Source of the DNA: Rebecca billardiae RCC1528
Taxonomy: Eukaryota; Protista; Haptophyta
Direction of reading: 5' to 3'
Length of the DNA: 64,000 bases
NCBI GenBank assembly: GCA_965240325.2
Contig: OZ251224.1
Span: 930,001 to 994,000 of the forward strand
This document shows positions 1-61,223 of this stretch, in pieces (position 1 is the stretch's first letter; every line of letters starts with the position of its first letter). The translations under genes were made by a program, and so were the position numbers. The notes under the pieces were generated by a model that searched no databases, was not told the origin of the DNA, and worked only from the letters and a program-made list of their open reading frames with translations.

Positions 1-991
1 ATAGACAACTTATCATTAGTAACAGGCAGCAGGCTTATCAATTATATTATTCGTCTGCTTATTGAATAAGCCGGCCGCGTAATTATACGCTGCCTGCGCA
101 GATAATGCGGCGTCGGCCGTCGGACGCGGGACGACTGAGTGAGACGAGGCTTGCATGACGAGCCTCCAGCGGGCACCACAGTAGTATCAATCAATAATAA
201 ATTTTCGGATGATCTAGGCTGTGCAGCGGGTGGCAAAATCACTGGCATGGCCATGATGCACGAACCGTCACCGGCCTGACCGTATTAAATTATCGCGATC
301 GTCATATAATTAATTATATATCATTTAAGACGACTGGTGAAGATAAACAATTATGATGTGTCAATCAGCTTGGCGACACATGGTGCTTATAATGACGATT
401 TTAAAATATTTCAATAATAGTAGTCAGCATCATCGGACGGCACTTAGCCATCAGAACGGCGGATTACTAATGCTAATAATGTCATGCAAATCACAATGCA
501 CCAATGTCCGAATGACACGGACTGCTGAGTCTCTATCTGTAGTACTTGTAACAGTTACACAGTCTAAGCGGCTGGCCCGCAACGGACGGAACTGCTTACT
601 GTGCCAGTAAATAAAGTAGTACTGTGACGAACTGACTGTACTTAAACTGTAGTAGTTACTGTAACTGGCGCAGGCATTATTACTATAAATACTATTTCGA
701 TATATTTACATTTATCCATATATATATATCAGTCTGAGCAATAATACCGACCACAATGGTGTTCATTAATTCAACAGCCGCTTCAGACAGACGACTGAGT
801 GCCATGCCTCACGCTTCCGCGGCGGCTGTCTCATCGATCGCAGTGATGGTCGACGTCGGATGGAGGTTGATCCCGGACGCTGCGCCGGGGCAGCCCGTCC
901 CCGAGCCGGCGCCGGCCGCACAGTGTCGTGACCAGCTTCTTTATGATCCGCGCCGCGGTCGGCAGGAGTGCGCGATGGCGGCACCGGCGGA

Positions 992-2276
992 TTACATGCC
1001 ACCCATCCCGCCCATCCCGCCCATCCCACCGCCGCCGCCTCCGACGACGGACTGCAGCTGCATGATCACGTTCATGATCTCGGGGTCGCCCATGTACTGC
1101 GCCATGTTGGCCGGGTTGGACATGATGTCCTGGATAGCCGCCATCACCTTTGGGTTCTGGAAAGCAGCCATCAGCTGCGGGTTCTCCATCAGCTTCTCCA
1201 TCATGCCAGGTGGGACGCCTGCCAGCAGTACAGAGGGAGGGGGCAGCACGCAGCAAGGGTCGCGCGGTGGACCGGCGTCAGCACTGGGCTGCGGGCATGG
1301 GACGAGCATGCGCCGCAGGTGGCGGGGACGGGCGGTGGCGCTCACCTGGCATCCCGCCCATGCCCGGCATCCCGCCCATGCCCGGCATGCCGCCCATGCC
1401 CGGCATGCCGCCCATGCCCGGCATGCCGCCCATGCCCGGCATGCCGCCCATGCCCGGCATACCACCGGGGAATCCACCACCACCACCCGACGACGACGAG
1501 CCTGCGCTGCGCTTGGCCTGCTCCTCGCGCCACTTCTTGTCACGCGCAGCGCGCTTCTGCTTGCGCACGTGCAGCTGCTGCACCTTGCCGCCGACAAACT
1601 TGTTGACCGCCTCGGTGTCCTCGTCGAAGTCGATGCGCTGGCCAGCCGCAAGATCCGACTGCGCGAGCTCCCACTCGCCCAGCATGCGATAGGCCTTCCC
1701 TCGGCACTTGAGCGCAGTGGCGGAGTCGGCGTTGAGCGCAAGGGCCGCGTTGCAGTCACGGATCGCAGCGTTCGGCTTCTTCAGCTTGGCGAAGATGGCG
1801 CCACGCTTGGCATAGGCGAGCGCTGATGGCGCGAGCTTGATCACCTCGGTGTACTTAGCGATCGCGCCGTCGAGATCGCCGGCCTCGAGCAGCTCCACGG
1901 CCTGCATCTTGAAGGGCATGGACTGGTCGCGCATCTCGTCAGTCACCTCGACGCTCGGATCGCCCATCTCCGCGGGCTCGTCCTCGTCGGGCTCGACGCG
2001 GCCGGGGTCCTCCTCCTCCTCCTCCTCCTCGCTTTCCGGCGGTGGAGCCGGAGGAGCGCTGTGCGGAGCGGCCCCACCGATGCCGGGGTCGACGTCCTCG
2101 AGCTCGGGCATCTCGTCGGACTCGTCATCTGACGCATCCGCTTCGGGGATGCGGAACGACTTCAGGAAGGTCTTGAGGAAGTCGAGCTCCGGGTCGTGGA
2201 TAAGGGACGGGCCTGCTTGCACCTCCGCCAACAGCTCCTTCGCCGCCTTCACCAGCTGGGGCTGCTTCAGCCCCAT
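992..2276 (-). CDS. ST13: Hsc70-interacting protein (HIP/ST13): dimerisation domain, TPRs, GGMP repeats, STI1/DP domain; exons 2276-1346 and 1218-992
   Basis: N-terminal 'PSLIHDPELDFLKTFL', acidic stretch, TPRs ('AKRGAIFAKLKKPNAAIRDCNAALALNADSA'), (GMGGMP)n. Intron 1219-1345 (GTGAG...GGCAG) joins in frame to the STI1 domain 'NPQLMAAFQNPKVMAAIQDIMSNP'. Confidence 0.93.
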
Positions 2277-2494
2277 CGCGCACCGTCCTATATCGCGCGG
2301 AGACGGTCCTGTCCAACCGCGCGCGCGACCTGACAGCGAGGAGCGCGCCGCCCTGACCGTGCACGCGTCCAAGTCGCCAGCTGTGCTACGCGCGAACGAA
2401 TATTATATTGCGGTCGAAAAGACGAAAACGCGCATTTTCGCCGGCGCTGGGCGCCAAGCGCGCCACGCGTGCGCACTGCGCAGCCATTGTCATC

Positions 2495-3046
2495 ATGCTG
2501 TCGCGGTGGTGTCTGCGTGGCCGCGCGCTCTCGACATCGTCGGACCCGGCTAAGTGGCGCGGCGCCGTGGAAGGCCCCTTGGAGGCAGTTTCGGGGTTCG
2601 TGTGGGGCCCGATCAAGCGCCGCGGTGACAACGCGTGGGTGGCTGAGAAGGCCGCACCGAAGCGCGGGCGCCGGCTCCTCACCGAGCTGCAGCACGAGAT
2701 GGAAGCAAAGTCGTACACGGCAGAGCCTTGGCGAAAGATGACGCACTTCCGCTCGGGCGACGGTGTGCTGGTGCGCTACGTCACTTCGCTCACGCAGAAG
2801 AAGGAGAACGTCTTTCGCGGCCTTTGCGTCGGCAAGAAGCGCACAAACGGCTGGGCGGCAGGCTTCTGGGTGCGCAACATTGTGGCGGGCGAAGAAGTGG
2901 CTGTCTACTTCAAGACGCTGTCGCCAATGTTGCGAGGGGTGGAGGTGACGAGGAAACGCGTGTTCAAGGCAAAGACGAACAAGCTAAACTTCATGGCCGG
3001 GCGCTTCCGCAAGTTTGTCAAGGGTCGCTCGCTACCTTCGATGTAA
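2495..3046 (+). CDS. MRPL19: Mitochondrial ribosomal protein bL19m
   Basis: Arg/Ser-rich presequence 'MLSRWCLRGRALSTS'; L19 core 'FRSGDGVLVRY...FRGLCVGKK...FWVRNIVAGEEVAVYFKTLSPML'. Confidence 0.85.
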   Translation: MLSRWCLRGRALSTSSDPAKWRGAVEGPLEAVSGFVWGPIKRRGDNAWVAEKAAPKRGRRLLTELQHEMEAKSYTAEPWRKMTHFRSGDGVLVRYVTSLTQKKENVFRGLCVGKKRTNGWAAGFWVRNIVAGEEVAVYFKTLSPMLRGVEVTRKRVFKAKTNKLNFMAGRFRKFVKGRSLPSM

Positions 3047-3478
3047 CCATGTCCCGACTGTCGCGTTGGCCCGGGCTACAACTTAGAGTCGTCACTTTGG
3101 CAACGCCCCACTGCGGCTCATCAGATGATCATCCCGGCGGATCCATGATGTGACCGTTGATGTCGTCGGCTCTCCCGGTGAGGCCGTGACGGTAGGGCCC
3201 TGGCACTCCGATGCTGAACTGCACTGCATGCTTCTGTGAGTATATTCAGCGGAACTCAACTGAGTTCTACAATACAGTAGACGAAGGTCAGGAACCGCGG
3301 CGTACGTCGACCAAGCTCAGAGCACGAAAGCACTCTCAAGCAGCGGGCGCGCGGCGGCGCGCGCCCCCGCTCGCTCGGCCAGCGCTCCAAATTGATGATG
3401 GCTGTCACGAAAATAATAATCGGACATCCAGACCGCCCAGACGCGGCCACGCGGCGAGCGATCGTGGACGTCGTCGTC

Positions 3479-4414
3479 ATGCACAGCGTCATCGTCGTCG
3501 CCGCAGCCCTTGGCAGTTTCGGCCTGGCGCGGCCGAGCGAACGGCTCGCGTCGTCGCGCGCGCCAGCACGATCTCGCGTGAGGATGGCAGGGCCCATCCG
3601 CGCTGTCGAGGTCTGCACTTCGGACGTGGACAAGCTCGCGTCCTTCTACGAGGCGTGCTTCGGCATGTCGAGGAAAGCGGACTCTGCGGATCTAAAGTGC
3701 GCAGAGGTGGGCTACGAAGGGGACGACGTGTGCCTGAAGGTGGTCGAGCGCGACAGCTTCCGCATCGGCGAAGGGCTTGGCGCCATCGCCGTGTACGCCG
3801 ACGACATCGATCAGGTGGCGGGTCGCGTCGAGGTGCGTGGTGGGATGGTTCTCGCTGCTCCGCAGAAGTGCACCGTCGGCCCGAGTAAGATTCCGGACGA
3901 GCCCAAGGGCACGGTGCACGAGACGTACGAGGCGCTTGTCGCCGACCCCGAGGGCTACCGCTTCCGCCTGATTCAGCGCGCTGGCTCCCCGGGCAAGATT
4001 GTGAAGGTCGTGCTGTGCGTAACCAACCTCGAGCACTCGACTGAGTTCTACTCCGAGCTGCTTGGCATGCGCGTGCTGCGCTGGCGATCAAACCTGTCGT
4101 CCGACCCCATGTCGACGTCGCTCACCGTGCAGCTCGGCGAGGTGGGCGCCATCGCCGAGGGCGTCGTCCTCGAGGCGGCCCCCGACGATGCGCCCAAGTC
4201 CGCGCTGCTCGAGCTCCAGTACCCGTTCAACACGCGCAAGATTGACGTGGGCGATGGCGGCGCTGGCCGGCTCACGATCGCCGCGGCCGAGGCTGGGTCG
4301 AAGGCTCAGCGGGCGCCGTCGGCGTACGGTGAGCTCATTGACGGGCCTGGCGCCTCGGGAGACACTCGCCTTCGCGATCCCGACGGTTACGAGCTCCTGC
4401 TGGTCGAGGCATGA
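3479..4414 (+). CDS. Glyoxalase/VOC-fold protein (two VOC modules), probable bipartite plastid presequence
   Basis: 'SFYEACFGM', 'DPEGYRFRLI', 'VTNLEHSTEFYSELLGM', 'LLELQY', 'RDPDGYELLL'; hydrophobic signal followed by an Arg/Ser-rich transit-like segment. Confidence 0.8.
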   Translation: MHSVIVVAAALGSFGLARPSERLASSRAPARSRVRMAGPIRAVEVCTSDVDKLASFYEACFGMSRKADSADLKCAEVGYEGDDVCLKVVERDSFRIGEGLGAIAVYADDIDQVAGRVEVRGGMVLAAPQKCTVGPSKIPDEPKGTVHETYEALVADPEGYRFRLIQRAGSPGKIVKVVLCVTNLEHSTEFYSELLGMRVLRWRSNLSSDPMSTSLTVQLGEVGAIAEGVVLEAAPDDAPKSALLELQYPFNTRKIDVGDGGAGRLTIAAAEAGSKAQRAPSAYGELIDGPGASGDTRLRDPDGYELLLVEA

Positions 4415-5106
4415 GCCCTCCCTCTGGACTGCACGGGCACTCGCTGAGTTGGGCTCTACGCGGTGATCGTGGCTGTTCGGCTCACCCCAGCTTCGCTGCA
4501 CACGCGATCTGGCGGAGTGTCGAGCCGAATGCCGCTGCACCACACGGCATGGGCAGCCCGTCGATCGTGGCGCTCACACCCCGCGATCTCGCGGCTCGGA
4601 GCATTGTGCCATGATCGATGATGGGTCACCGCCCGGCGAGCATCCGCCTTCCTCATTCCTGCACAACGCCAACGCCAACGGACACGGTTCCGAATCCGAA
4701 CGTTACTAGTCAAGCTACGGCGGAACGTATGAGGTCCCGAAGTAATGCGGCCGCACGCCGTCCGTCGTTGCAGTAACAGCCAGTAACTTGACTGCTAACT
4801 AGCGGCCATGTGAACGTTGACGCCGGAAGGTCGGACTGCGTACAGTCGGCCGCATCGGGTGCTTGCGCCGTGACCGTGTGGCGCGGGCGGCAGGCTGGCC
4901 AGGCCTGGGAAGGGCTCGTCGGCGCGAGGCCACAGCCACAGGCCGCAGATGGGCTGCTGCTAGGACGTGAGCTCGACAGCCAGTCCGCCAAAAGGAAACA
5001 CAGCAGTCGTAGCAGCTCGGACAGCGGCGGGTTCGGGTGCTGCGCCGTCTGCTGGGCGGCGGCGCGTCTGATCCCGCGCCCGCGCCCCGCACGCGCACGG
5101 GCAGCC

Positions 5107-7428
<2,322 letters not shown>

Positions 7429-44217: not shown

Positions 44218-46359
44218 TCATCCCAGCATCATCATCGTCCGTCGGACATCGTCGTCGGATCGTCTGAGAGTGGCACCGAGAGTCTTAGACTTAGCACGAC
44301 TCCTTCTCGCCCGCCGGTTCTCAAGCACGTGAGCCAGCAAGGGCAGATTAATCTTCTTGTTGGCGCCTCCTGAGAGGTGGGCGAAGCAGACGTCGCTAGG
44401 TCGGCCGCTGCTCTTGGAGTCCGTGGACTCGATGCGCCCGCTGGAAGTCACGTGCATGCCTATGGGCAACCCAGCGCCGAGAAAGTCCGTCAACGCGCCG
44501 CCTCTGCGCATGCCGAAAGTGTTGGTGACGAGCAGTGAGCAATAGTCGAGCGCCACGTCGTCAGTGTGCCCTCCCCAGTATGCGCTGTACGCGTACTGGT
44601 CGTCCTGCACGTACGGGATCGGCTCCTTGTCGAGCCACTCGTGGTGCTTGTACCACATGCCGGCCTCCATCTCTCGAGCCACACGCTCGACCATTGGCAG
44701 GAGCGCAGACACTTGGCCTGCAAAGAGACCAGAGTTCAAGACGTAAGGCCACTGCATGTTGCGGTGCATCTTGTTGCGAGAGGGGCTGGGTGCCATCGCA
44801 GAGTCAGAGGGAGTGCTTGCTTGGGCCTCTGCGAACTGAGCGCACAGTTGACGCGCCCACGGAGGCTGCCGTTTTTGCCATCGCACAGGCAGAGGCGCTC
44901 TGCCCCCGCGGCCGGAGACCTCGGGCTCCGCGTTGAGGTTGCTCCATTCGCCGAGTCCGCCAAGCTCGGCGCCAAAGACGATGGAGGCACCCGACAAGGC
45001 AAAGAGCGCGTCCAGGCGTTCGCGCACCCCTGCCAGAAGATCTCGAGCACCAGTGCCGCCTGCTGCCCGGCAGCCGCCGAAGAAGACGTCACTGCCATCG
45101 GCAAAGATGACGGTCAGGTTTGAGCGGCCAGCCGCATGCGCTGCTCGGAGGTAGTCGCGCAGAGCGACCACCTTTGTGATGTGCCGTGTGTACATGGGCG
45201 CGTTCTGGCCAGGGTGCGCCCCGGCGAGATTGACCACCGGGCATCGCTCCCCGCGCAGATCGGCCGCAGCGCATATCATCGTCTCGAGCGGGCTACTCAC
45301 CACCTTGCCGCCGTGGGTGTTGTACGTGAGCACCTCGATGGCGCCAGTTCGTCGCCACGGGCGCGATGCCACGTAGCGATTCCACGTGTCTCGCCACTCG
45401 AGGAAGGCACTGCGAGCAGCCGCAGTGCCGAGCATGTCCGCCGGGATCGGGATGAGGCTGTGCGCATACGAGGCATCGCCGTTCCACCGCCAGCGCCTCC
45501 ACGTCGTCCATGGCGCGTACTGGTCCCGCACGTGCGCAATCCCGGCTGGGATGTCAGCCCACGCTCGATCCACGGAGGGGTCGCCGCCGATATCGAAGGA
45601 CAGCTCCTCCGGGAGCAGCGCAGCGCGCTCGGGGTGGGCGCGCACCCACTCCGCCAGCAGCACACCATCGGAGGCAAGAGCTACATCTGGGTGTGAGCGG
45701 TTGCTGCCGGTGCGCTCTGCTGCTCCACGACGAGAGCTGTCCGCTGCGCTGAGGAGCTCGGAATGCAGCCGAGTCGACGGGCGAATGATCACCGTGCGTG
45801 CGTGCACGCGCACCGTTGAGGATGCGCACATCGGCGCGCAGTCCGCAACGATCGCGGCGGCCTCTCCGGCACGCTGCAGTACGATGGGTAGTGCCACGTC
45901 CATGTTGCCGCGCACAAGCGCACCTCGCGTGATGAAGGCGATCATCGCCATGCCAGGCACGGTCCCTGGATCGGCGAGAGCGGCAATTGGGGCCAGAGCG
46001 CTGCCCGAGGCGAGCGGGAGGATCTTGCACCCCATGTCGTCCAGCCAGCGGCGCTCCTCGGTGCCGGCGGCGCCATGCGCAAGCAGCACGATCATCTGGC
46101 GCATCGCGCCGTGCTGCCGCAGCGCGTATGCCAGCTCGAGAGCTAGCGGCACGTCGTGCGGCCGAGTCACGGAGGTCGCATAGCCCCAGCGCAAGCCCGA
46201 TTGGTCTTTTGCACGCTGTTCGCCGTGGCCAGCAGCACGCAATGACCTGCTGCTCGGTGTGAAAAGCGCCTCTTCCGCTTGGGTCGACGTGGCGAACACG
46301 ATGAGGAGGAGCCAGGTGAGATGCGAGCGAATCCCATGTGCGACGGACGCCCACATCAT
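44218..46359 (-). CDS. Secretory-pathway glycosyltransferase: degenerate GT8-like N-domain + PLOD-type GT-A domain
   Basis: Signal peptide; 'YATSV...ALELAYALRQ...MIVL'; 'TKVVALRDYL', 'VIFADGSDVFF', 'IVFGAE', 'LNSGLFAG', 'DDQYAY', 'ALDYCS', 'AHLSGGANK'. Confidence 0.78.
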   Translation of the reverse strand: MMWASVAHGIRSHLTWLLLIVFATSTQAEEALFTPSSRSLRAAGHGEQRAKDQSGLRWGYATSVTRPHDVPLALELAYALRQHGAMRQMIVLLAHGAAGTEERRWLDDMGCKILPLASGSALAPIAALADPGTVPGMAMIAFITRGALVRGNMDVALPIVLQRAGEAAAIVADCAPMCASSTVRVHARTVIIRPSTRLHSELLSAADSSRRGAAERTGSNRSHPDVALASDGVLLAEWVRAHPERAALLPEELSFDIGGDPSVDRAWADIPAGIAHVRDQYAPWTTWRRWRWNGDASYAHSLIPIPADMLGTAAARSAFLEWRDTWNRYVASRPWRRTGAIEVLTYNTHGGKVVSSPLETMICAAADLRGERCPVVNLAGAHPGQNAPMYTRHITKVVALRDYLRAAHAAGRSNLTVIFADGSDVFFGGCRAAGGTGARDLLAGVRERLDALFALSGASIVFGAELGGLGEWSNLNAEPEVSGRGGRAPLPVRWQKRQPPWARQLCAQFAEAQASTPSDSAMAPSPSRNKMHRNMQWPYVLNSGLFAGQVSALLPMVERVAREMEAGMWYKHHEWLDKEPIPYVQDDQYAYSAYWGGHTDDVALDYCSLLVTNTFGMRRGGALTDFLGAGLPIGMHVTSSGRIESTDSKSSGRPSDVCFAHLSGGANKKINLPLLAHVLENRRARRSRAKSKTLGATLRRSDDDVRRTMMMLG

Positions 46360-49300: not shown

Positions 49301-49908
49301 GTCCTACCGAGTGCTCCGCTCAGCGACGCCCTCGAACGGGCTCACACGGCTCTGCCGCACGACCAGCCAAGAGGCGCACGCGACGCGAGGGGAGGGCCTC
49401 GCCGGCCCTCCACCATCAACCGCGGCTCCCGAAGTGCCCTCCCCTCCGCTCCCGGACTCTGTGAGGTCCAGCCCAGCCGCACTCGCGTGAAGCGAGTGCG
49501 ATGGCGGAGAGTACCAGCCAGGAGGCTCATAGTAGTAGTGCACGGCATAACTAACTTCAACTAAATTTTAATTAGGGCGGACCTACGACCCGCCATTAAT
49601 TTCCTTTGCCTCCAACGCGCGCATCAAAGGACGATACAAATAACGGCCCGCCATACAGCTCTCTACCGACCGTACCCCCATAGTATATATGATCACGATC
49701 CGCCACACTTATTAGGTCAGGCTGCGATGAAGCGTTTTTAATGATATTCTATCCGGCTGACCGACCACCGCCCTCGGCCACGTGCGAGGGGAGCACGAGC
49801 GGGGCTGGCGCCCCGCGGGGGCGGGGCGACTCGACTCTGGTGACGCCTCCAAGCCGCTCGTGCCGCGCGCCTGGGGAGCCCGCGCTGCCGCTCGCCACGC
49901 CGCCAAAC

Positions 49909-51012
49909 ATGGGCTCTGACCGGGTCCAAAGCGCGCCAGGGCCTTTCTCTACGGCAGCGTCAAAACGCTGGGCCATCGCGCTCGCCGCCGTTCTCCCCAC
50001 CTTGGCTTTCCCTGGCGTGGCCATGGTACCAGAACCTTGCTCTACCACATCAGGATCTACGCGCAATGCGGTGCTCGTGAGGTCGGTGGCCCCGACCGAT
50101 GCACAATTCGCACGCGTGGTGACGTGGGCGGACGAGCTGTGTGGGACCGAGTTCGCACTCACAGTGAGCATCGACATCAGCTCTGAGCGAGGTAGAGCCA
50201 CCGCAGAGCGCTTTCGGGCGCGTGGCGTAGGCGTGCATGTATACGACCAGCAGGACATGTTCGACCAGTCTCCTGGGCTCGAGACCTTCCTGATTGAGCA
50301 ACACCCTTTCAAGGCTGGCAACGTCCTGGTGAACAAGGAGATGAGGAGGCGAAACGCAAGCTTCGCTTGGATGTTCCACGTGGAGGCCACCGTGCTCTGG
50401 GCACAGGCGGTCAACTTCTCGTTCGATTCCGTGTGGGTCATAGAGGATGACGTGGGCGTCATCTGTGGCCCATCAGCTGGTGGGCCAGCCGGGAACCTGC
50501 TGCCCTTCCTGAGAATATATGCACTGGGCACACACGCCAGGCACGATGTGGTTGCACACGCGAAGAGAAGCACGCTCAACTACCCATACAAGTACACGGT
50601 CACCAAACAATTCGGGCGACGTGTGCCGAAGTGGGGGCAGCGGTGGACATCGGAGTTTGTGATGCGCATTTCTGCGCGGCTGCTACGGTACCTGGCCGTG
50701 CTCGAGGCAGGCGGAGCGACAGGCATCTCAGAGATCGTCGTGCTGTCGGCCGCGCTCGCGAATACAACGCGCTGGAGCGTCGGTTGGCTCAACAATGAGC
50801 ACATCAGCCAGTACTACACTTGGGATGCCCGTGTGTCACGGTCAGTTTGGAAGCGGCTCACCACTGGCAACAGCACTGGATCCGAGAGCAGCCTCAGGAA
50901 AACGCTGATGCTCCGCAAGTACCTTCCTTCGTGGGCCACCCGACGTGTGCGCAGACCTCGACCGGCTGGAGGGGGGGATGGGTGCAAGCTGTACCACGCC
51001 CTGAAGTTCTGA
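49909..51012 (+). CDS. Putative GT-A-fold glycosyltransferase-like protein (DUF3405-like)
   Basis: N-terminal TM anchor; 'FDSVWVIEDDV', 'VMRISARLL', 'SEIVV', C-terminal 'LYHALKF*'. Confidence 0.6.
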   Translation: MGSDRVQSAPGPFSTAASKRWAIALAAVLPTLAFPGVAMVPEPCSTTSGSTRNAVLVRSVAPTDAQFARVVTWADELCGTEFALTVSIDISSERGRATAERFRARGVGVHVYDQQDMFDQSPGLETFLIEQHPFKAGNVLVNKEMRRRNASFAWMFHVEATVLWAQAVNFSFDSVWVIEDDVGVICGPSAGGPAGNLLPFLRIYALGTHARHDVVAHAKRSTLNYPYKYTVTKQFGRRVPKWGQRWTSEFVMRISARLLRYLAVLEAGGATGISEIVVLSAALANTTRWSVGWLNNEHISQYYTWDARVSRSVWKRLTTGNSTGSESSLRKTLMLRKYLPSWATRRVRRPRPAGGGDGCKLYHALKF

Positions 51013-52489
51013 CGACACAGTGTATATACGGCAGAGCGCTAGAGTAGAACCGATGATATCCATCACCGAATATAATAATATGATACAGGCTTCTTATACC
51101 CCCATATGCTAATAATATATACAGGCTTCTTATGGCTGACGATCGACCGGATGGCGGTCCGCCCGTGTCAGCGTGTCCGACGTGACGCCTGATGACGACA
51201 GCTGTCACAGCCCATGAATATGATCCGTAGTGGGCGCGGTAGTCAGAGCTCCGGCCGTTACGCTCCCGAGTGACGCAATCTCTCGAAATCACGAAATGTG
51301 AAATATCCCCTCGGTTTGTAACTGTTTGAGTCCGTTTAAGTTCGTTAAGGCTTAATTCCAGGGTGTAGAATCCGCCTGTGCCAATTTCAGACTGCCAAAA
51401 TGTAATCTAGACGGTGCGATTCTGGTTCAAATATTAATAGCGAGATCGCCTTGGAGATCCCAGATCCGCCAGATCGTGTATCTCCCCTACTAATGTTGCC
51501 GAGATCGCGTCGAGATTGAGGTCGTATATCTCCAGTATGTGACATTTTTTCGTCGCAAAACTTGTCAGCGTGACCCCAGTCCCCACTCCCCAGGTCATTC
51601 CAGGCGAATATTGACATCCCGAAGTTTGAGAGCCTCGTCATCTCAAGACGACAGAAAGTTGGACGATTTTATTGGGCCACGCACCCCCCAGTGGGGCTCT
51701 GACCCCTCGTATATGATCCGGTCGCCATCACTGACGACTACTGAATCACTGAGTCCGGACTCCTGCTGCGCGATATATATGTGGCGTTATTGGCACAATA
51801 ACTGAGTGTCTAAGAGCGACACCAAGATCCGGCTCGCTTGGCATCATCAACCAGCTGTCCGGCCGGGGCGCCCGCCGCCCAGCGCGCGCAGTCCTGGTCG
51901 GACCCCTTTTCGGCAGCCAATCCGGTCGGCACCGGGCACCGCCTGCAGGACTTGCTCGGCGATTCCTGTTCCATCCGAGGCGACTCTTCTGGCCTCGGCG
52001 CGGCTCGGCCCAAGGTACGGGGGCGCCATGACACAAGGCGCCGAGCCGAGCAGGGGGCCCACGACACCGCACGCTACACTCTCCTCCGACCGCTCTCGAC
52101 CACGGGCAGCTGCGCCACCGCACTGCCCGCGCCCGTCGTTCGTTGGTAAAATCCCGACCTATGTAACATGATCGTGTCCCAATCATGATCATCATCGTGG
52201 ACTGTCCCAAGACGCAGTTCACGCCACGACCATCCAGCTCTCGGTCGTGCTCGACGCTTCGAGCGAGCAGGGCATGGCGGAGTGGCTAGACATATATATA
52301 TCGATCGATCGCGACGACTGCTACTGTACAGGACTGCGCTGCGCTATATATTACACTTCGTCATCAGACAGCAGTTCCGCCGGGCGCGATTATTTCTTCC
52401 AGCACTCGCTGCCGAGCACACCGCCCGCCAGGTGTGAGCAGCCAGGGGGTAAGACTCAAATTACAAGCACAATCATAGCTACCAGGGCG

Positions 52490-55400
52490 TTAGGCACGTC
52501 GCTGGCGCACGTCCCTCGCCCATTCGACATCGTCTGCGCCGCCAGCTGCACCACGCGCGGTGGCACCACGGCTCCGACGGCGCAGCGTCTGCACCCGCTG
52601 CTCGAGCTCCTCGACGCGCTGTCTGTCCGCGTCCACCGCCGCCTTCTCTCTCGCCAGCTCGCGCTCGAGTCGCGTGAGGTTTTGCTTCTTGCGCGCCAGT
52701 TCTTGCCGCGCGTCACGCAGCGTGCGCTCGAGCTCGTCGGCGCCGTCTCCCACGCCGCCCGCAGGCTCATCGGCCCCGCCGCCTGCTGGGCGCTCCTCCG
52801 CCTCGGCCGAGGCTGCACCGGGCATGGGCCCCTGCTGCTGCGCGCTTGCTGCCTGCGGCGCGGGCTGGGCGGCGCAGGTGGCGTGCGTGGCGGCGCGTCA
52901 GATCGGCGCGAGCAGCCGCCGCAGCACAGCGGGTGGTGCGGCGCGCCGAGCGGCACACGCACCTGCGGCTGGGCGGGTGCGACGAGGCTGTTGGCTGCGG
53001 CTGCCACCGCGAGGGGCGGCGCGCCCGCCCGGTGCGCGTGCTGCTGCGTCTCCGCGGGCGGCTGCTGGCTCGCCTCGCGCTCGGTGTCGCCGTCGAGGTC
53101 TTCGATCGGCGGCTCGGGCGGCTGGCGCGCGGGCTTGACCTCCACGGCGAACTCGAGCTGGTGTGCGGCGGAGCGGCGTGCGGGGCGCGCGCCGGGGTTG
53201 AGCCAGACGCGCTGCGCGCGGCGCGTGCGCGCGGCGCGCGTGGCGCACCTTGTCCTTGGGCCCGTTGGGGTCCGTGAACACACAGCTCCACGTGAACGTG
53301 CCTGCGCGCGGCTGCTGCACCACCATCGCGCGCCATCCCTCGCCCGCGGGGTCGGCGATCAGCACGGCGAGGACCGGCTGCTCGCGGCGCGCGCCCGTCA
53401 CCGCGTGCAGCTGCACGCTCACCGCCGGGTCGAGGCACGGCTGTGCGCCGTCCGTGAGCACGCGCGCGCGCACGAGCGCAGCATCACCCTCGGTGAACGT
53501 GTGGTGCTCGGCGCCCGGCGGCGGCGGCTCGAGCTGGAGGCGGTTGGGGACGCCGCTGGGCACCACGCGCAGCGCGAGCCTCGCCTCCAGCGGCGGCGCC
53601 GGCGGCGGCGGCATCCACTTGAGCTGCACCGTCACCTCGCGCGGCAGGCTCGCGCCGCCCCGCATCGGCGTGGCGAGCAGCGTGAGCTCCCGCGTCGCGG
53701 TCGCCGCGCGCCCCTGCGTCAGCAGCTTGGCCGACACGCAGCGCACGGCGCGCACGGCCCTGGGCGCGCCGGTGTGCAGCTGCACGAGCTCGTCCGCGCA
53801 CTCGATCTGGATGGTGGTCCCGCCGCCCGCCGCGCGCACCGCTCGCGCGAGGCACTCGTTCCCGTGCTCCCCGTCCAGCAGCACGGCCTCGAGCCCAAAC
53901 GGCCTGCCGTTGGACACCTCCGCGTGCGTCGGCCGGAGCACGCTGATGCACGCGGGCGCGCCCGCGGCGATGTGCACGCGGAGCGAGGAGGTGTCGAGGC
54001 GGTGTGTGGCGAGCGTGGTGTTTGCGAGGGCGCGCGGCGGCACGCGCGCGCTCAGCTCGACGACGGCGCCAGCGTCGCCGCTCAGCGTGTACGTGCGAGC
54101 CCACACCGCCGCACCGCCCGCCGACGCGGCCGCCTGCCCCTCGTCACCAGCCCACGGCGCCCACTTGGAGCCTTGGGCGGGCAGCAGCGTCACGCCCGCG
54201 TCGTCCTCCTGCGTGCCCAGCTCGACGGCGGACCAGTCGAGGCGGTCGGCCTCGAGCGCGCGCACCGGTGCGCCCGTCGAGTCCACCAGCTCGAGCAGCA
54301 GCTCGAGCGCCGAGCCCGACGGCACCTCCGCCCCCGGGCGCAGCGCGCGCAGCGGCCGCAGCCGCCACTCACACGGCGGCAGCGGCAGCCCTGTGAGCAG
54401 CAGCAGCCCCAGCCTGCCGCCCAGCCGCGCCTCGAGCTGCACCGTCTCATCCGGCGCGATCGCGATGAAGCACGTGAAGCTCGCCACCCCTTTCTTCACC
54501 TTGGCGCGCGCGACGTGCTCGGTCGCGCCGCCCGCCAGCCGGCGCTCCACCAGGAGCTCGCTGGCGCACGCGAACGCACTGTCGACGGCGCCGAGCGAGC
54601 AGGGGGCAGGCGGCGCGCCGTCCGCGTCGCCTGCCGGCAGGTGCACGCGCACGCTCAGCCTCTTGAGCGGCTCGTGCGCCTTGCGCGCCGCGCGCACGCA
54701 CGTGCTGCCGGCCACCTCGTCGAGCACGGGCGACTCTCCCTCCGCCACGTCGAACGCGAGCCAGCGCCTCTCGACGATCCACTCGAGCGCGGTGCTGCAA
54801 GGCGCCGCACCGCTCGCGGGCGGCGGCGCGGGCCACTCGACGGTCAGCCGCGCCGCGTCGCCGAATGGCGCGCTGAAGTGGAGCTGCTTGATCGTGAGTG
54901 TGCCCTCGGCCGGCGTCACTTCGTCCGGGTCCAGCTCGATGCCCTCGACGCACACGCGCAGGTACGGCGCCTCCACCTCGGCGGCCGCGCACGCGTTGCC
55001 CCACGCCGCCTCCACCTCGGCGGCCGCGCACGCGTTGCCCCAGCTGTCCGTCACTCGGAGCGTCAGCTTGCGCTGCACGTCCCCGTGCCGCACGGCCGTG
55101 CCGCGCGCGTGCGCGGCCGCGGGCTCGACGGCGGCGATGGCGCCGGCGGCGAGGAGGGGCGGCGTGCCGCCCACGCCCACGCCGTGCCGCGCGGGCACGA
55201 GGCCGCCCAGCTCGCCAGCCTCCTCGCCGTCCAGCTGCAGCCGGAGCGCGAGGTCGAGCGCGGCGCGGCCAGCAGGGAGCCGAAAGCCGGGCGGCTCGAG
55301 CCTCAGCCCGCTCAGCCTGAGCGCGCTCACGCGCGCCGCGCCTTGCGGCGGCAGCTCGCCGTCGAGCTCGGGGAGGCTCAGCTCGAACGGCTCGGCGCGC

Positions 55401-58400
55401 CAGTCCGGGCCGCGCACCACGCGCACGCCCTCGCCCAGCCCCGCCGCCTCGACGCGCACGCACGCGCCGATGCGCGGCAGCTGCGGCGCGTGTGCGAGCG
55501 CGCGCTTGTTGCTGTCGTGCAGCAGCAGCACGAGCGGCGGCAGCGCGCCCTCGCCCATGCGCACGAGCGTCCGCGCGGCGGGCGGGGGCGGCGTGTCCCA
55601 GTACGCGCACACACCCGACGCCTCGCCGGCGCGCAGCTCGAAGACCCCCTCGAACTCCGGCTGCGCGATGCACTCCGGCGCGCACGCTCGCACCGCGTAC
55701 TCGCCCGGGGCCATCGCGCGGCCGTCAAAGTGGAAGTAGCGGTAGTAGCCGTCGAGCACCGTGTCGTTGGCGCCGCGGCTCATCTGCAGCGGCGCCTCGA
55801 GGGCGCTCTCGCCGCTCTCGCGCGACACGATGTCCACGCTCAGCGTCCCGCTCAGCGGGCGCGCGCAGTACAGCTTCTCCGCCTTGCTGCTGTCGCAGCC
55901 GTTGCGCAGCGCCACGCGCAGGTACGTTTTCGCAACGCCCTCGATGCTCGGCGGCGGCGCGCCGCCCTTGCGGCCGAGCGGCGGGAGCGACAGGTAGCTG
56001 CTCGAGCTCGCGTGCACGCTCACCTCGAGCCGGTGCGGCAGCTGCCGCTTCAGCCCGGTGCGGTGCTTCGCCACCTCCGCGGGCGGCACGTTCAGGTCCT
56101 CGCGCCGCTTGATCTCGCCCAGCGAGATCTCGTCCGGCTCCACCGCCTCGCTCTCGTGCCCGACCACGCGCTCGAGGACCGCGCTGTACCCGCTGGTCTT
56201 GGCGGGCTCGGGGGGGCCGCCGAGCGAGACGAAGTGGAGCACCTTGCCGAGCAGCTTGACCCGGCCTTCCCGCTGAAGGCTGTACCGCACGTACAGCGGC
56301 CGCGCGCCCTCGGCGGTGTCCAGCTCGAGGCCGAGGTGGCGCAGCTTGGGTGTCTTGTAGTCGTGCGGTCGGTCGGAGTCGAGCGCACGCGTCTCGTACG
56401 GCCACGACACGTCGAAGTAGGTGCCCTCGTCGCGCTTGCACATCGCGCACAGGTAGTCGTGGGTCACGTCCCTGAGCGACATCGCCTCCGCGCCGCCGCG
56501 CGCGATGGCGGCCGCGGGTGCGGTGGAGCGCGTGCGCGTGCGCGGCGCGTCCGGCGCGCGCGGCCCCCTCGTCGGCCGCGCGCTCTCGACGCCGTGCGGC
56601 GGCGGCGGCGGCGGCGGCTCTGCCGCGAAGCGCACGTTGCGCTCGTCCACGCCCTCCAGCACCTGCCTGCGCGATTCGTACGTCAGCACGGACTTGTTCA
56701 TGTCCACCTGGAAGTCGGGCGGCAGGAAGAGCGCACCTCCCAGCCGGCCGAACGCCTCTGCCGGCAGCACGCGCGCGCGGTTGCGGTGCGCGCCGCCAGT
56801 TGAGGACGTCGGCGGCTTCATGCAGTCCCACAGCAGCAGGGGCTCGTGCGGCAGGCGGCAGCCGTTGTGGAACACCATCACGCCCGGCTCGCCCAGCGGG
56901 CTCGTCTCCTCCCCGCCGAGCAGCGGGAAGTAGAAGATGATGAGAACGCACTCATGAATGCACTCGTCTCCGCTGATGCTCACGCTCAGCGCGAGCCGCA
57001 GCTCCCGACCCCACGCGCTCAGCAGGCTGGCGTTCTCCGCCTCGAGCGCCGGGCGCTCGGCCTCGAGGTTGGCGGCGTTCTGCCGCAGCAGCATCTCCAG
57101 CGTCGCGCCGACGCAGTCGTCGTACCTGGGCAGCCGCTCGGGCGCGGGCGTGCGCGCGTGCGCGCCCAGCTCGGGCGCGGGCGTGCGCGCGTGCGCGCCC
57201 AGCGCGTACACGGCACTGCCGGTGGCGCCCGAGCGGATGCAGACCTCGAGACTCAGCCGGAGCAGCGGCTCGGTGTGCGCCGTGCGGCACACGCTGCCGT
57301 GAATGATCGGGAAGTACGCGTCGTTGAAGAACGAGACGAGCTTCAGCCGCGCCTCCTCCGATCCGCGCAGCTCGTCGAGCTCGGCGCCGGGCACGCGCGA
57401 GACGACAAACTTGGTGAATCTCGAGCCCCAGGCCGGGTCGGCAAGGCGATCGCGCTCCGCCGCCTCGAGGCCGTCGGCGGCGTAGCCGCCGCACCAAGGG
57501 TTCTCGCCCTTCTCGTTGAGCGCGGCGCACTCCTGCAGGTCCCACTTCGCGCACGCCACCTCCTCCGCCGCCTCGCCCGCCGCCGCCCCCTCGCGCCGGC
57601 ACGAGCGCGCCTCCACGCGCCCCTTGCCCTTGGTGAGCGCGGAGACAGCCATCTTGCAGCCCACGCCGTACTGCGAGATCAGCCCGGGGCACAGCGAGCC
57701 GTAGCTCTGGTAGTTGACGCCGGCGCGCCCGACGCTCTCGTCGCGCGCGTGGCCCGAAAGCCCGAGCACGAACAGGTCGGACAGGTCGGACGGCGTGCCG
57801 TTGAACCCGTCGCCATTGTCCCAGACGCTCAGCTCGGACGCGTCCAGGTCGACCTCCACGCGCACGCTCGGCACGCTGCGCACTGTGGAGGGCGGCGAGG
57901 GCTCGGCGGGCGGCGTGCCGCGCGTGTCGAGGCGGCGGCGCAGCTCGTCCATGCACGCCCAGAACTCGCGCAGCTCCTCGTCCTGCCGCGCGCCCACGCG
58001 CTTGTCCACGAGGTCGTGCAGCTTGGGCGCGCCGCGCCGCAGCGGGAAGCCAGGGCTGCACGCGAGCTCGGACAGCGAGCGCGCGGCGATGGGCGCGACC
58101 ACGTCGCCGCACGAGGGGCCGAGGAGCTTGAGGCGGGCGTGCTCCCACGTCGCCCGCACGCAGCTGTCCTCCTCCAGCGGGCTGATGCCCTCCTCGTCGC
58201 GCGCGGGCCGCAGCGAGTTTGGCAAGGCCTCGGTCGAAGCGGTGAGCTCACGGCTCAGCGCGCGCACCGCGACCTCATACGCGCACCGGACGTCCTCGAC
58301 GTGTTGCGTGTGGTGCCGCTTCATGGTCGCGTGCACGCCATTGTCAGTCAGCTCCTTGAACGCCTGGTTGAACCGCACATTCGTGCGCAACGTGTCCGTC

Positions 58401-58708
58401 ACGAGATTTAATGCGGGCGTGAGTTGCATGGACGTCCATTGCCGAGCGTCGACGGGCGTGGACGGGGGCTGCATACCGTCGTCGGTGCAGCCGGGTGCGA
58501 CGGACCCGAGGGAGCGCGCGTCGCCATCGCCACTGCTCGTGGCGTTGGCACCAGCGTGGGCGCTGATGGGCGCGGCGGGCGTGGGTGGGTCACCGTCCGC
58601 CGCTCCGTTCGCAATGCGACGGACGGTGGCGGGCGTAGCTTGGGCCGTGTGGGCGGTGAGGGGGTGCGTGCCGTCGCTCGCCTCACTCGTGGCGTGAGGG
58701 TCGCTCAT
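52490..58708 (-). CDS. SMCHD1: SMCHD1/GMI1-like GHKL ATPase (~2005 aa) with Ig-like linker and short C-terminal coiled coil, no SMC hinge seen; exons 58708-53249, 53157-52963, 52852-52490
   Basis: GHKL motifs 'FKELTDNG', 'WDNGDGF', 'ISQYGVGCK'. SMCHD1-like blocks 'FHNGCRLP', 'AFGRLGGALF..DFQVDMNK', 'RQLPHRLEVS', 'DSWGN' (compared from memory). Introns 53158-53248 and 52853-52962 are GT-AG, phase 0. Confidence 0.8.
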
Positions 58709-59126
58709 CTTGTCGGCGCGTGCGCGGTGGAATGGAGGGCGGGGGGTGGCGTTCGCCGATGGGCGCGGAGTGTCGCGACCGATCGCCGAGCGCCGAGGCG
58801 TCGTTGCTTGTCCTCTTTGGACACGTCCAAGCCCAAGCTCAAGCGTTGCGGCGACTGCGCACACCGGACCAATGACAGGGGATGGACCAATGACAGGGGA
58901 TCCGGGGAGAAGGCCGGAGGGGCGCGTCGCGCGAGTACGAAAACTAAGCAGCTCCTACGACTACTACGTCTTTATAGTAGGCTTTTGGCGACGGTGCAGG
59001 CTAAGACTGTCACAAGCGGGCTACGGGGCTAGTAAGCTAGTACACACAGGACAGTCAAAGTATGATCAAAGAGATGAATGATCGTGTGCGCGCTCCTATC
59101 CTCCAAGACGTCTCACCTCCTGCGTC

Positions 59127-61223
59127 TCACCTCACGTACGCGACGATCTCAGCCGACGATGCAGCGGCAGTGAAGAACGGGTGGCGGAGCGCGGCGGCCG
59201 CCGACAGCCGGTCGGACGGGTCCCACTGGAGGAGCTGCCACGCGAGGTCGATGCCGGCCTCGGGGAGCGCGAATGATGGCAGCGGGTTGAGCTGCTTCAC
59301 AGCAGAGAAGAACGCCGCGCGCGCCTCTTGGCGCGTGCCCTCCGAGTCCGGCTCCGCGCCCACCGCGTCGCCGTGCGGCCGGGCCGAGCGCTCCGCCGGC
59401 TGGTGGAAGATGCCGAAGCGCTCCCACGCGTGGGCGAGGGCCGCCTTGCGCTGGACGCTCGCGGGCTCGTTCCCCAGGGTGAGCCCGATGATGGCGCGCG
59501 TGCGCTTGTCCGGCTTGAAGATGTCCGCCGAGCCGACAAGCAGCTCGAGCAGCAGCACGCCCAGAGACCAAAGGTCGTACGCGGCGCCGCGCACGCGCAT
59601 CGGCGCGCCGTCGTGCAGCGCGACCTCGGGCGGCTGGTACGCGGCGGTCTCGCCCTGGATCGGGTCGGCGTCCGGTGGGTAAAGCGTCGCGTTGTTCAGC
59701 GAGTCCAAGTCCAGGGCCGAGCCGAAGTCGATGAGGCGCACGGTGATGTGCGGCGCGCGCGCGCTCCACGGGTGAGCCGACTGATCCCCGTCCGGGCCAC
59801 CGCCGTCACGCCCGCCACGGGCGGCGCCGGCCGCCGACTGACTGCCGTTGCCGGCGTCGTCGGCGTCGTCGGCGTCGTCAGCGGCGGGGTGGTCGTAGCG
59901 CACGATCACATTCCCCGGCTTGAGGTCACGGTGCACGATCCGCCGCGCGTGCAGGTCGGCGACGGCCTCGAAGAGCTGGCGCAGCGTCTCGCGCAGCACC
60001 TGCAGCCCGCGCTCGTGTGTGCGCAGCTGCCGCCACAGCGCGGACGGTGCGAGCACCTTGAGCGGCTGCGGGGGCGGCTGCGGCGGCTCGTGCCGCGCGC
60101 GGTGCTCGCGGCGGCCAGCGCCCCCGCGCGCGTGCGCGCCGCCGCCGCCTCGCCCTGCGCGCTCCACCGCGTTCTCGCCGGCTGCGCGTGCAGTACCGCC
60201 GGCCATGGGCGCGGGCGCGGACGCGCCCGCCGCGGCCAGCAGCCCGGCAGCAGCGTCCGCACTCGCCGCGCGCGCGCCGGGTTGAGCCCCCAGCGCTGCG
60301 GGCACGTGGCGTCGCGGCTGGGAAGGCGGCGGCAGGCGCAAGTCCTCGCCATGCGCCGGCTCCCCGCCACCCGCCGCCTCCGACGGCCCCGGCGGCGACC
60401 GACGCTCCCCGCGCATGGCGACGGCGCTCTCGGCCGCCGAGGCCTGCGCGTCGCCCGTGCGGCCGCCCGCGCACCCGCCCTTGCCGGAGCACATCGGCTC
60501 GATGTCCCTGAGCTCGTAGATCAGGTCGTGCAGCGAGGTGCCCTCGTCGGCGAAGACGAGCCAGAGGCTCTTCTTCGCCGCAGAGCCCTCGCCCTCCGCC
60601 TCCACCCCCGGCTCCTCCACGGAGAGCGTCTCGCCGAGCACGCCGTCCGCGTCCGCGCTGAACCACTCCATGAAGCGCGACACGTGCGGCACGCCCTGCA
60701 GCTTCTGCCCAAAGTGAATCTCGCGGAGGCCGGAGCGGAAGGAGGGCTCGTGCTCGGCATCCATGCTGATCCGCTTGAGCACGAACGCATACACGCCGCG
60801 CTTCGCGCGGCTCGACACGCCCCTCCACACCTCGCCGTGCCCGCCCTTGCCCACCTGCTTGCGCAGGTGGTAGTACGGCGGCGCGGAGAGCACGTCGGGC
60901 TGCGCAGGCTCGGCGTAGCCGAGCAGCCGAGCGCTCCAGCTCATCACATGCCGCATCCACGACTTCGAGTCGAACGGCACGAGCTCGAGTGGCCCCGGCA
61001 GGTTGGGCTCGGGGAGGAGGCCGAAGCTCTCGAGGGCCACCAGCTCGTCGCCAAAATGCGACGAGGCGGTGAGCGCGTGCGTGCGCGGCAGGGAGGCGAT
61101 GCGCTCGACGAGGATGTAGTCGCCGATCTGGTCATCCGCCTCGTGCGGGGACCCCGCCATCATGACCAGCTCGCCGGCCCCTGCCGCCGCGGCGGCGAGG
61201 CGGACGAGCCAGCAGGCGAGCAT
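59127..61223 (-). CDS. Ser/Thr protein kinase, plant At3g63330-like, with hydrophobic N-terminus
   Basis: 'GKGGHGEVW', 'FVLKRI', 'SGLREIHFG', 'WLVFADEG', 'HRDLKPGN', 'IDFGSAL', 'YQPPE', 'YDLWSLGV', 'DPSDRLSA..AL.HPFF'. Confidence 0.9.
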   Translation of the reverse strand: MLACWLVRLAAAAAGAGELVMMAGSPHEADDQIGDYILVERIASLPRTHALTASSHFGDELVALESFGLLPEPNLPGPLELVPFDSKSWMRHVMSWSARLLGYAEPAQPDVLSAPPYYHLRKQVGKGGHGEVWRGVSSRAKRGVYAFVLKRISMDAEHEPSFRSGLREIHFGQKLQGVPHVSRFMEWFSADADGVLGETLSVEEPGVEAEGEGSAAKKSLWLVFADEGTSLHDLIYELRDIEPMCSGKGGCAGGRTGDAQASAAESAVAMRGERRSPPGPSEAAGGGEPAHGEDLRLPPPSQPRRHVPAALGAQPGARAASADAAAGLLAAAGASAPAPMAGGTARAAGENAVERAGRGGGGAHARGGAGRREHRARHEPPQPPPQPLKVLAPSALWRQLRTHERGLQVLRETLRQLFEAVADLHARRIVHRDLKPGNVIVRYDHPAADDADDADDAGNGSQSAAGAARGGRDGGGPDGDQSAHPWSARAPHITVRLIDFGSALDLDSLNNATLYPPDADPIQGETAAYQPPEVALHDGAPMRVRGAAYDLWSLGVLLLELLVGSADIFKPDKRTRAIIGLTLGNEPASVQRKAALAHAWERFGIFHQPAERSARPHGDAVGAEPDSEGTRQEARAAFFSAVKQLNPLPSFALPEAGIDLAWQLLQWDPSDRLSAAAALRHPFFTAAASSAEIVAYVR

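Follow-up and report, generated by a model that had tools for sequence, protein, structure and literature searches.

A 64,000 bp stretch of the genome of the haptophyte Rebecca billardiae RCC1528 (assembly GCA_965240325.2, contig OZ251224.1, positions 930,001 to 994,000 of the forward strand; here called the window, with all positions counted from its first base) carries an intact SMCHD1-like gene on the minus strand (58708..52490). The encoded protein combines a GHKL ATPase and an S5-type transducer with a long beta-rich linker and a short C-terminal coiled coil but, unlike SMCHD1, it has no SMC hinge. We consider it to be a hinge-less GHKL ATPase of the SMCHD1 type, which would form a dimeric clamp in the style of MORC proteins from SMCHD1-type parts, and we assign a probability of roughly 65% to this interpretation. 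The gene is predicted to consist of one exon of 1,820 codons and two small 3′ exons (Table 1), which sum up to a protein of ~2,005-2,009 residues in the predicted splice model. Homology searches were run on the exons separately.

The protein belongs to a small family which, so far, has been found in pavlovophyte haptophytes and in sequencing samples only. When residues 1-1200 were compared to 1.84 billion representative proteins (exhaustive phmmer), six clusters were retrieved (E-values 5e-55 to 2e-14, 28-37% sequence identity). The named cluster members are from Pavlovales sp. CCMP2436 and Diacronema lutheri, while the rest are from Logan and JGI assemblies; all relatives from public databases are labelled as hypothetical proteins. 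The relatives used for comparison include P0016 from D. lutheri (KAG8464798.1, 1,805 residues) and P0001 (locus L004, Logan sample ERR14847148, positions 1-6278), a paralogue with 37% sequence identity from the sample that also contains the window DNA. A homologue from another organism is found at positions 120-6869 of L006 (Logan SRR30872635). Gene calling has divided it into two genes, namely P0004 (454 residues, from the N-box to G2) and an open reading frame (ORF) of 1,374 residues, and the gap of 1.2 kb between them must hold the transducer, either in another frame or behind introns. Automatic gene calls split members of this ATPase family. Word-indexed protein searches with region 91-1000 and with family alignment A1 missed even known family members and are uninformative with respect to relatives; probably, low-complexity words of this 75% GC protein swamped the candidates. 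We found no published account of SMCHD1-type proteins in haptophytes or of hinge-less forms, which does not prove that none exists.

ATPase, transducer and closest solved relative

In the protein, a Bergerat-fold ATPase whose catalytic motifs are complete is followed by a probable S5 transducer; for both, the nearest counterparts are in SMCHD1, a gene-silencing protein of humans. The N-box (KELTDN, residues 118-123, with E119 and N123) was read from the sequence, as were FHNGCRLP at residue 613, FQVDMNK at residue 666 and the transducer NK at residues 671-672. In the G2 box, the Y, G and G are invariant throughout the family alignment. The transducer motif FGRLGGALF..FQVDMNK aligns with CYNRISGALF..FQVSTNK from 6MW7, the solved structure of the SMCHD1 ATPase module. 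The latter string had been quoted in a preliminary description of the window, made from the sequence alone, and it does occur in 6MW7. At the level of domain families, SMCHD1_S5 from Pfam is matched at residues 607-676 with 22.1 bits, below the cutoff of 27. This is the only Pfam family that is matched in the window protein and its relatives P0001, P0002 and P0003 (18-25 bits, cutoff 27).

Among proteins of solved structure, SMCHD1 is nearest by profile as well as by fold, with Hsp90, MutL and MORC behind it, and the resemblance to SMCHD1 that had been pointed out in the preliminary description is thus borne out. A family profile of the ATPase region, compared to all PDB sequences, has 6MW7 as its top match (E 3.6e-6), followed by HtpG (0.05), MutL (0.13) and MORC3 (0.5). 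For the full-length family profile, 6MW7 is found at an E-value of 0.011. When the single sequence was compared to the PDB by phmmer, there was no match, and SMCHD1 is reached by family profiles only. Structural comparison was based on an AlphaFold2 (AF2) model of residues 91-960, which has a mean pLDDT (predicted local distance difference test) of 49.5, with values of 65-85 in the GHKL core. In a Foldseek search with the AF2 model, the four chains of 6MW7 are on top (E 2e-14), with Hsp90 and GRP94 next in rank (5e-9). The VIA comparison gives a Z-score of 19.4 for 6MW7 (root mean square deviation 3.9 Å, 339 aligned residues, 20% identity), compared to 15.6 for Hsp90 and 14.5 for MORC2. The VIA alignment, which extends to residue 549 of 6MW7, pairs model residue 14 with residue 133 of 6MW7, so that E119 comes to lie at around E147/148 of SMCHD1. 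From the aligned ranges, E119 is thus opposite the catalytic E147, plus or minus one residue.

Other searches were less specific. With the ATPase, the ESM Atlas feature search returned generic HATPase_c_3 clusters only, and the shape search returned only HtpG-like entries with TM scores below 0.4. A recent origin from prokaryotic GHKL defence systems was considered and found to be unsupported: PADLOC gave no matches, and NCBIfam none beyond weak sacsin-type matches to the G1 box.

The N-box and the G1 box are separated by 174 residues in the window protein; in other GHKL proteins, this distance is roughly 25-45 residues. A long insertion at this position had already been noted from the sequence, and closer analysis confirmed that the spacing is in frame and kept in P0003 and P0004. 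In a scan by codon position, the G+C content at third codon positions (GC3) of frame 0 is 0.92-1.00 without interruption from ~58300 to 53260, so that this region represents one uninterrupted exon, with coding sequence and no intron between the N-box and the G1 box. The insertion has its own conserved positions in P0003 and P0004, while only its distal part is found in P0002. P0016 and P0005 do not have the insertion, their ordinary N-box (E-F/Y-V-A-N-S) being located ~40 residues before G1. Judged from these sequence comparisons, the insertion is real and marks a subfamily. It is modelled by AF2 as helices with low pLDDT.

Automatic alignments mislead in this region. In the MAFFT alignment A1 (columns 270-300), the N-boxes of P0016 and P0005 (EFVANS and EYVANS, respectively) are placed on the helix 'EFWACMDEL', which is the end of the insertion in the window protein and not the KELTDN N-box. 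It is the common N-S-V-Q-S pattern which reveals the true equivalence of the N-boxes.

The C-terminus and the SMC hinge

The preliminary description had the protein end with a short coiled coil and without a hinge, and both points hold up. At the C-terminal end, an acidic, Pro-rich and disordered tail precedes a coiled coil of ~54 residues, whose seven heptads resemble a leucine zipper. Its heptad 'd' positions are L, L, L, L, V, V, V, and its score was not reached by any of 500 shuffled sequences. At the heptad 'a' positions, a mixture of residues is found (L, A, K, L, E, D, L, L). All Pfam matches of predicted exon 3 are weak and are to coiled-coil families only.

No match to the Pfam SMC_hinge family was found in any of the exon pieces at E-values up to 10, nor was there any such match in P0001-P0006, in P0016 or in the L006 homologue. 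The 1.5 kb beyond the stop codon, up to a convergent ORF on the plus strand, do not contain a coding-like frame, and a 158-residue ORF within this region (51746..52222) has no Pfam match.

The ends of two relatives are equivalent in organization. In P0016 from D. lutheri, an acidic linker leads into a C-terminal coiled coil of ~60 residues. The L006 homologue is encoded in a single open frame that begins with the post-transducer domain and continues across the beta array up to the stop codon. No splicing is needed to obtain its C-terminus, in which a Pro/Ser/Gln-rich linker of ~190 residues is followed by a coiled coil of ~45 residues and then by a short tail. BLASTP did not detect significant similarity between exon 3 and the C-terminus of P0016, and their likeness is one of architecture, not of sequence. 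As P0016 and L006 have a hinge-less end, this is a property of the family and not an error of the gene model. On the basis of the sequences analysed, the hinge is really missing.

Gene structure, other regions and neighbouring genes

The features of the gene are listed in Table 1. The ATG at 58708 is the first of the gene and is separated by 419 bases from the stop codon of the upstream protein kinase gene, and the identical start was called on Logan contig L002 (sample ERR14847148), which is identical to the window sequence. The gene region has a GC content of ~75% compared to 53-59% in the flanks, and a drop from 0.76 to ~0.55 is seen directly past the TAA stop codon. Beyond 53249, the long frame decays into Arg/Pro/Ala-rich out-of-frame text, with a GT donor coming next, and the coding signal shifts from frame 0 to frame 1 according to the GC3 scan. 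Predicted exon 2 encodes the last beta strand and then an acidic Pro-rich linker. The paralogue P0001 loses its frame at the same point as exon 1 of the window gene and resumes with the same 'LEV/LEF' strand, which lends support to the splice model. Its locus L004 has the intron after the last beta domain at the same position, followed by a long Pro-rich exon 2, and the contig stops before the C-terminus. An upstream ORF of 245 residues on L004 (105-842) is probably the N-terminal part of P0001.

Table 1. Positions of gene parts, motifs and domains of the SMCHD1-like gene, and of its 3′ flank, in the window.
Feature	Window positions	Strand	Basis or remarks
Exon 1	53249..58708	-	1,820 codons, ATG to GT donor; open frame, GC3, start called on L002
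N-terminal low-complexity region, ~95 residues	58424..58708	-	translation; GC3 only ~0.8
N-box KELTDNGVHA	58328..58357	-	kept as KE..DN..QS in P0003 and P0004
Helical insertion, ~160-174 residues	57854..58327	-	in frame, coding-like GC3
G1 box DNGDGF, residues 297-302	57803..57820	-	aligns with DNGRGM of 6MW7
G2 box YGVGCK, residues 347-352	57653..57670	-	aligns with FGVGGK of 6MW7
S5-type transducer core, residues 607-676	56681..56890	-	FGRLGGALF..FQVDMNK with conserved Lys
Pro/Arg-rich disordered linker, ~residues 701-742	56483..56608	-	translation; pLDDT <40
Beta-rich post-transducer domain, ~residues 743-900	56009..56482	-	position of the SMCHD1 BAH domain; conserved in the family
Beta-rich linker, ~920 residues	53249..56008	-	recurring D-x-x-G-N motifs
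Predicted intron 1	53158..53248	-	GT..AG, 91 nt; frame 0 to frame 1; splice sites read from sequence
Predicted exon 2	52963..53157	-	65 codons, phase 0; GC3 0.92 in frame 1
Predicted intron 2	52865..52962	-	GT donor; AG acceptor at 52866-52865 or 52854-52853, both in frame
Predicted exon 3	52490..52864 (start 52864 or 52852)	-	TAA stop at 52492-52490
C-terminal coiled coil, ~54 residues, seven heptads	52577..52738	-	in predicted exon 3
3′ flank	51013..52489	-	GC 0.43-0.71, no frame-specific GC3; reaches convergent ORF 49741..51012

Two in-frame tandem duplications occur in the coding sequence. One of them (57136-57203) is made up of 2.1 copies of a 33 nt unit with 100% identity, so that LGAHARTPAPE occurs twice (residues 503-524). 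Logan contig L002 breaks off exactly within this duplication. The other one (54964-55042) has 2.0 copies of a 39 nt unit with 97% identity, with WGNACAAAEVEA occurring twice (residues 1223-1247), so that one of the linker repeats has its conserved D-x-WGN-x-C motif in two copies. An additional repeat is located outside of the gene, ~160-190 bases upstream of the start codon (58866-58900), where an 18-nt unit with a CCAAT box, GGACCAATGACAGGGGAT, is present in 1.9 copies; it may be a promoter element.

The protein differs from SMCHD1 not only at its C-terminus. The N-terminal ubiquitin-like domain of SMCHD1 (residues 25-110) stabilises the ATPase dimer (PMC6620310). Such a domain is absent from the algal protein, where the residues preceding the N-box are of low complexity and the 419 upstream bases are not coding-like; its relatives begin 20-40 residues ahead of the N-box. 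The preliminary description had been silent on this absence, and also on the fact that a GHKL-S5 module combined with a coiled coil is the usual layout of MORC proteins.

Behind the transducer, a 'BAH-like' block had been described, and this label could not be confirmed. What is found at ~780-900 are strands of a beta-rich domain, modelled at a pLDDT of 68-84, and the exon-wise Pfam search did not give a match in this domain to BAH or to any other family. The subsequent linker had been described as Ig-like. The C-terminal 640 residues of exon 1 are modelled by AF2 as all-beta, and weak Foldseek matches are to Ig arrays of complement, alpha-2-macroglobulin, NUP210 and S-layer proteins. However, with a mean pLDDT of 38.5 this model is too poor for claims at the level of domains. 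A D..WGN..C motif in the linker is conserved across the family, while the ESM Atlas feature search with the linker did not give any matches. As far as can be told from the models, the linker is probably a tandem array of Ig-like domains.

The upstream neighbour on the same strand (59127-61223, minus strand) codes for a protein kinase of 698 residues (Pkinase, E 9e-26). This sequence is found unchanged in the Logan samples ERR14847148 and ERR14847151, and hence both of these samples contain DNA from this alga. On the other side, a 423-residue ORF (49741-51012, plus strand) is convergent with the SMCHD1-like gene, and a 713-residue ORF (44218-46359, minus strand) has a hydrophobic start which resembles a signal anchor; neither of them has a Pfam match. 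The neighbours were considered as carriers of a separate hinge and were ruled out, being the kinase, the 713-residue ORF that resembles a signal-anchored protein, and the ORFs of 423 and 158 residues which are devoid of Pfam matches.

Proposed mode of action, competing explanations and significance

The algal protein shares with SMCHD1 a GHKL ATPase with the full set of motifs, a probable S5 transducer with a motif ending in NK, a beta domain after the transducer, a long beta-rich linker, and a total length of ~2,000 residues. The short coiled coil near the C-terminus also has a counterpart, as the SMCHD1 hinge lies between two coiled coils of this kind (PMC7458401). In contrast to SMCHD1, the algal protein lacks the SMC hinge and the N-terminal ubiquitin-like domain and has the 174-residue insertion between N-box and G1, and identity over the aligned core is ~20%. 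GMI1 from Arabidopsis, likewise a large protein from the SMCHD1/MORC group with a GHKL ATPase module (PMC5651269), differs by its C-terminal hinge; it was set beside the algal protein by description only. A GHKL-S5 module plus C-terminal coiled coil is shared with MORC2, MORC3, MORC4 and plant MORC proteins, and C-terminal coiled coils are present in many MORC proteins alongside GHKL-S5 (PMC5651269). The MORC proteins are lower in score than SMCHD1 and Hsp90 (Z-scores 14-14.5; profile E-values 0.5-1). They have only 600-1,000 residues, often with a CW zinc finger, and are devoid of a beta-rich linker of ~900 residues.

In MORC proteins, the coiled coil serves for constitutive dimerisation while the heads dimerise by ATP, and we propose the same principle for the algal protein. 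By analogy, its C-terminal coiled coil would permanently join two chains, as does the hinge in SMCHD1 and the coiled coils in MORC proteins. Upon ATP binding, the two N-terminal GHKL heads would dimerise, so that the dimer would shut as a clamp around DNA or chromatin, to be reopened by ATP hydrolysis. Because the DNA-binding surface of the hinge is missing, contact to DNA would have to be made by the post-transducer domains or by the insertion. A second DNA-binding site has been described for SMCHD1, in its BAH and IGL-1 domains (bioRxiv 10.64898/2026.02.05.704097). By analogy only, a role of the algal protein in the silencing of repeats or in chromatin compaction is likely.

Several points weigh against this interpretation. 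The kinship to SMCHD1 is deduced from a ranking against solved structures, and all Pfam matches of the window protein are below the gathering score. The AF2 models are poor (mean pLDDT 49.5 and 38.5), with values above 65 only in the GHKL core and the post-transducer domain. Both 3′ introns and the stop codon are predictions from the sequence. Without the ubiquitin-like domain, dimerisation of the heads may work differently than in SMCHD1. Also, the two in-frame tandem duplications in the coding sequence might point to relaxed constraint.

Some of these points lead to other explanations. As the model of the 3′ exons is derived only from the sequence, a hinge exon could have been missed further downstream or could have been lost to a mis-predicted intron, and a GC-richer patch of ~350 nt (51820-52180) would be a place to look for it. 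We consider this very improbable: GC3 in the patch is not frame-specific, the ORFs there are without Pfam match, the convergent ORF starts already 1.5 kb downstream, the L006 homologue arrives at its stop codon in one open frame without a hinge, and the annotated D. lutheri protein is hinge-less too. The tandem duplications and the presence of paralogue P0001 in the same sample would also fit to a decaying or transposon-associated gene copy without function. There is hardly any room for this explanation, given that the frame is open over 5.4 kb with a GC3 of 0.92-1.0 and that the catalytic motifs are all intact; moreover, an identity of just 27-37% among the paralogues suggests that the duplications are old and that the copies were maintained by selection.

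The two other explanations accept the gene as it stands. The preliminary description had raised the option of a split machine, in which the coiled coil would pair with that of a separate DMS3-like protein which provides the hinge in trans. There is a precedent in RNA-directed DNA methylation of Arabidopsis, for which it has been proposed that DMS3 and MORC6 have the hinge and the GHKL ATPase on separate polypeptides (PMC5651269), although the algal ATPase is of the SMCHD1 type and not of the MORC6 type. The C-terminal coiled coil is kept in family members (the window protein, P0016 and L006), and its mixed heptad 'a' positions would permit a hetero-partner. As the adjoining 20 kb do not contain a hinge-like ORF but only the kinase, a predicted signal-anchored protein and ORFs without Pfam match, we consider a split machine to be unlikely. 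Alternatively, the protein could be a divergent MORC, or a GHKL ATPase that is specific to this lineage and has no connection to chromatin silencing, its likeness to SMCHD1 being due to shared GHKL-S5 ancestry. GHKL-S5 with a C-terminal coiled coil is indeed the MORC layout (PMC5651269), MORC2, MORC3 and MORC4 still reach Z-scores of 14-14.5, the protein-language-model search retrieved only generic HATPase_c_3 clusters, and both hallmarks of SMCHD1, the hinge and the ubiquitin-like domain, are missing. However, the profile E-value of SMCHD1 is about five orders of magnitude better than that of MORC, and its Z-score is higher by 5 units. The sole Pfam match of the transducer is to SMCHD1_S5, with no match to the MORC S5 or zf-CW families in the window protein or its relatives, and the beta-rich linker of ~900 residues is as in SMCHD1, unlike in MORC proteins (PMC7458401). 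Thus, we consider this explanation to be rather improbable.

If the protein is a hinge-less SMCHD1-type ATPase, a more far-reaching idea can be put forward, though only tentatively. The family might preserve, or might have re-invented, a 'proto-SMCHD1' in which ATPase, post-transducer domain and an Ig-like rod make up a chromatin clamp that is closed by a leucine zipper. The SMC hinge would then be an add-on to this machine and not its core. The family would represent a natural hinge-deletion experiment with at least two paralogues per genome, and one of its subfamilies would have a new helical arm of 174 residues inside the ATP-binding fold.

The mechanism of SMCHD1 is still open, and the hinge is regarded as essential both for its dimerisation and for its binding to chromatin. 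To our knowledge, the beta-rich linker, which makes up half of SMCHD1, has not been studied, and we are aware of next to nothing on the epigenetic machinery of haptophytes. A family which has the SMCHD1-type ATPase and linker, with a coiled coil in place of the hinge, would separate the job of the hinge from that of the rest of the protein, and it would bridge the architectures of MORC and SMCHD1. For the haptophytes, it would provide the first candidate for an ATPase involved in chromatin compaction or silencing.

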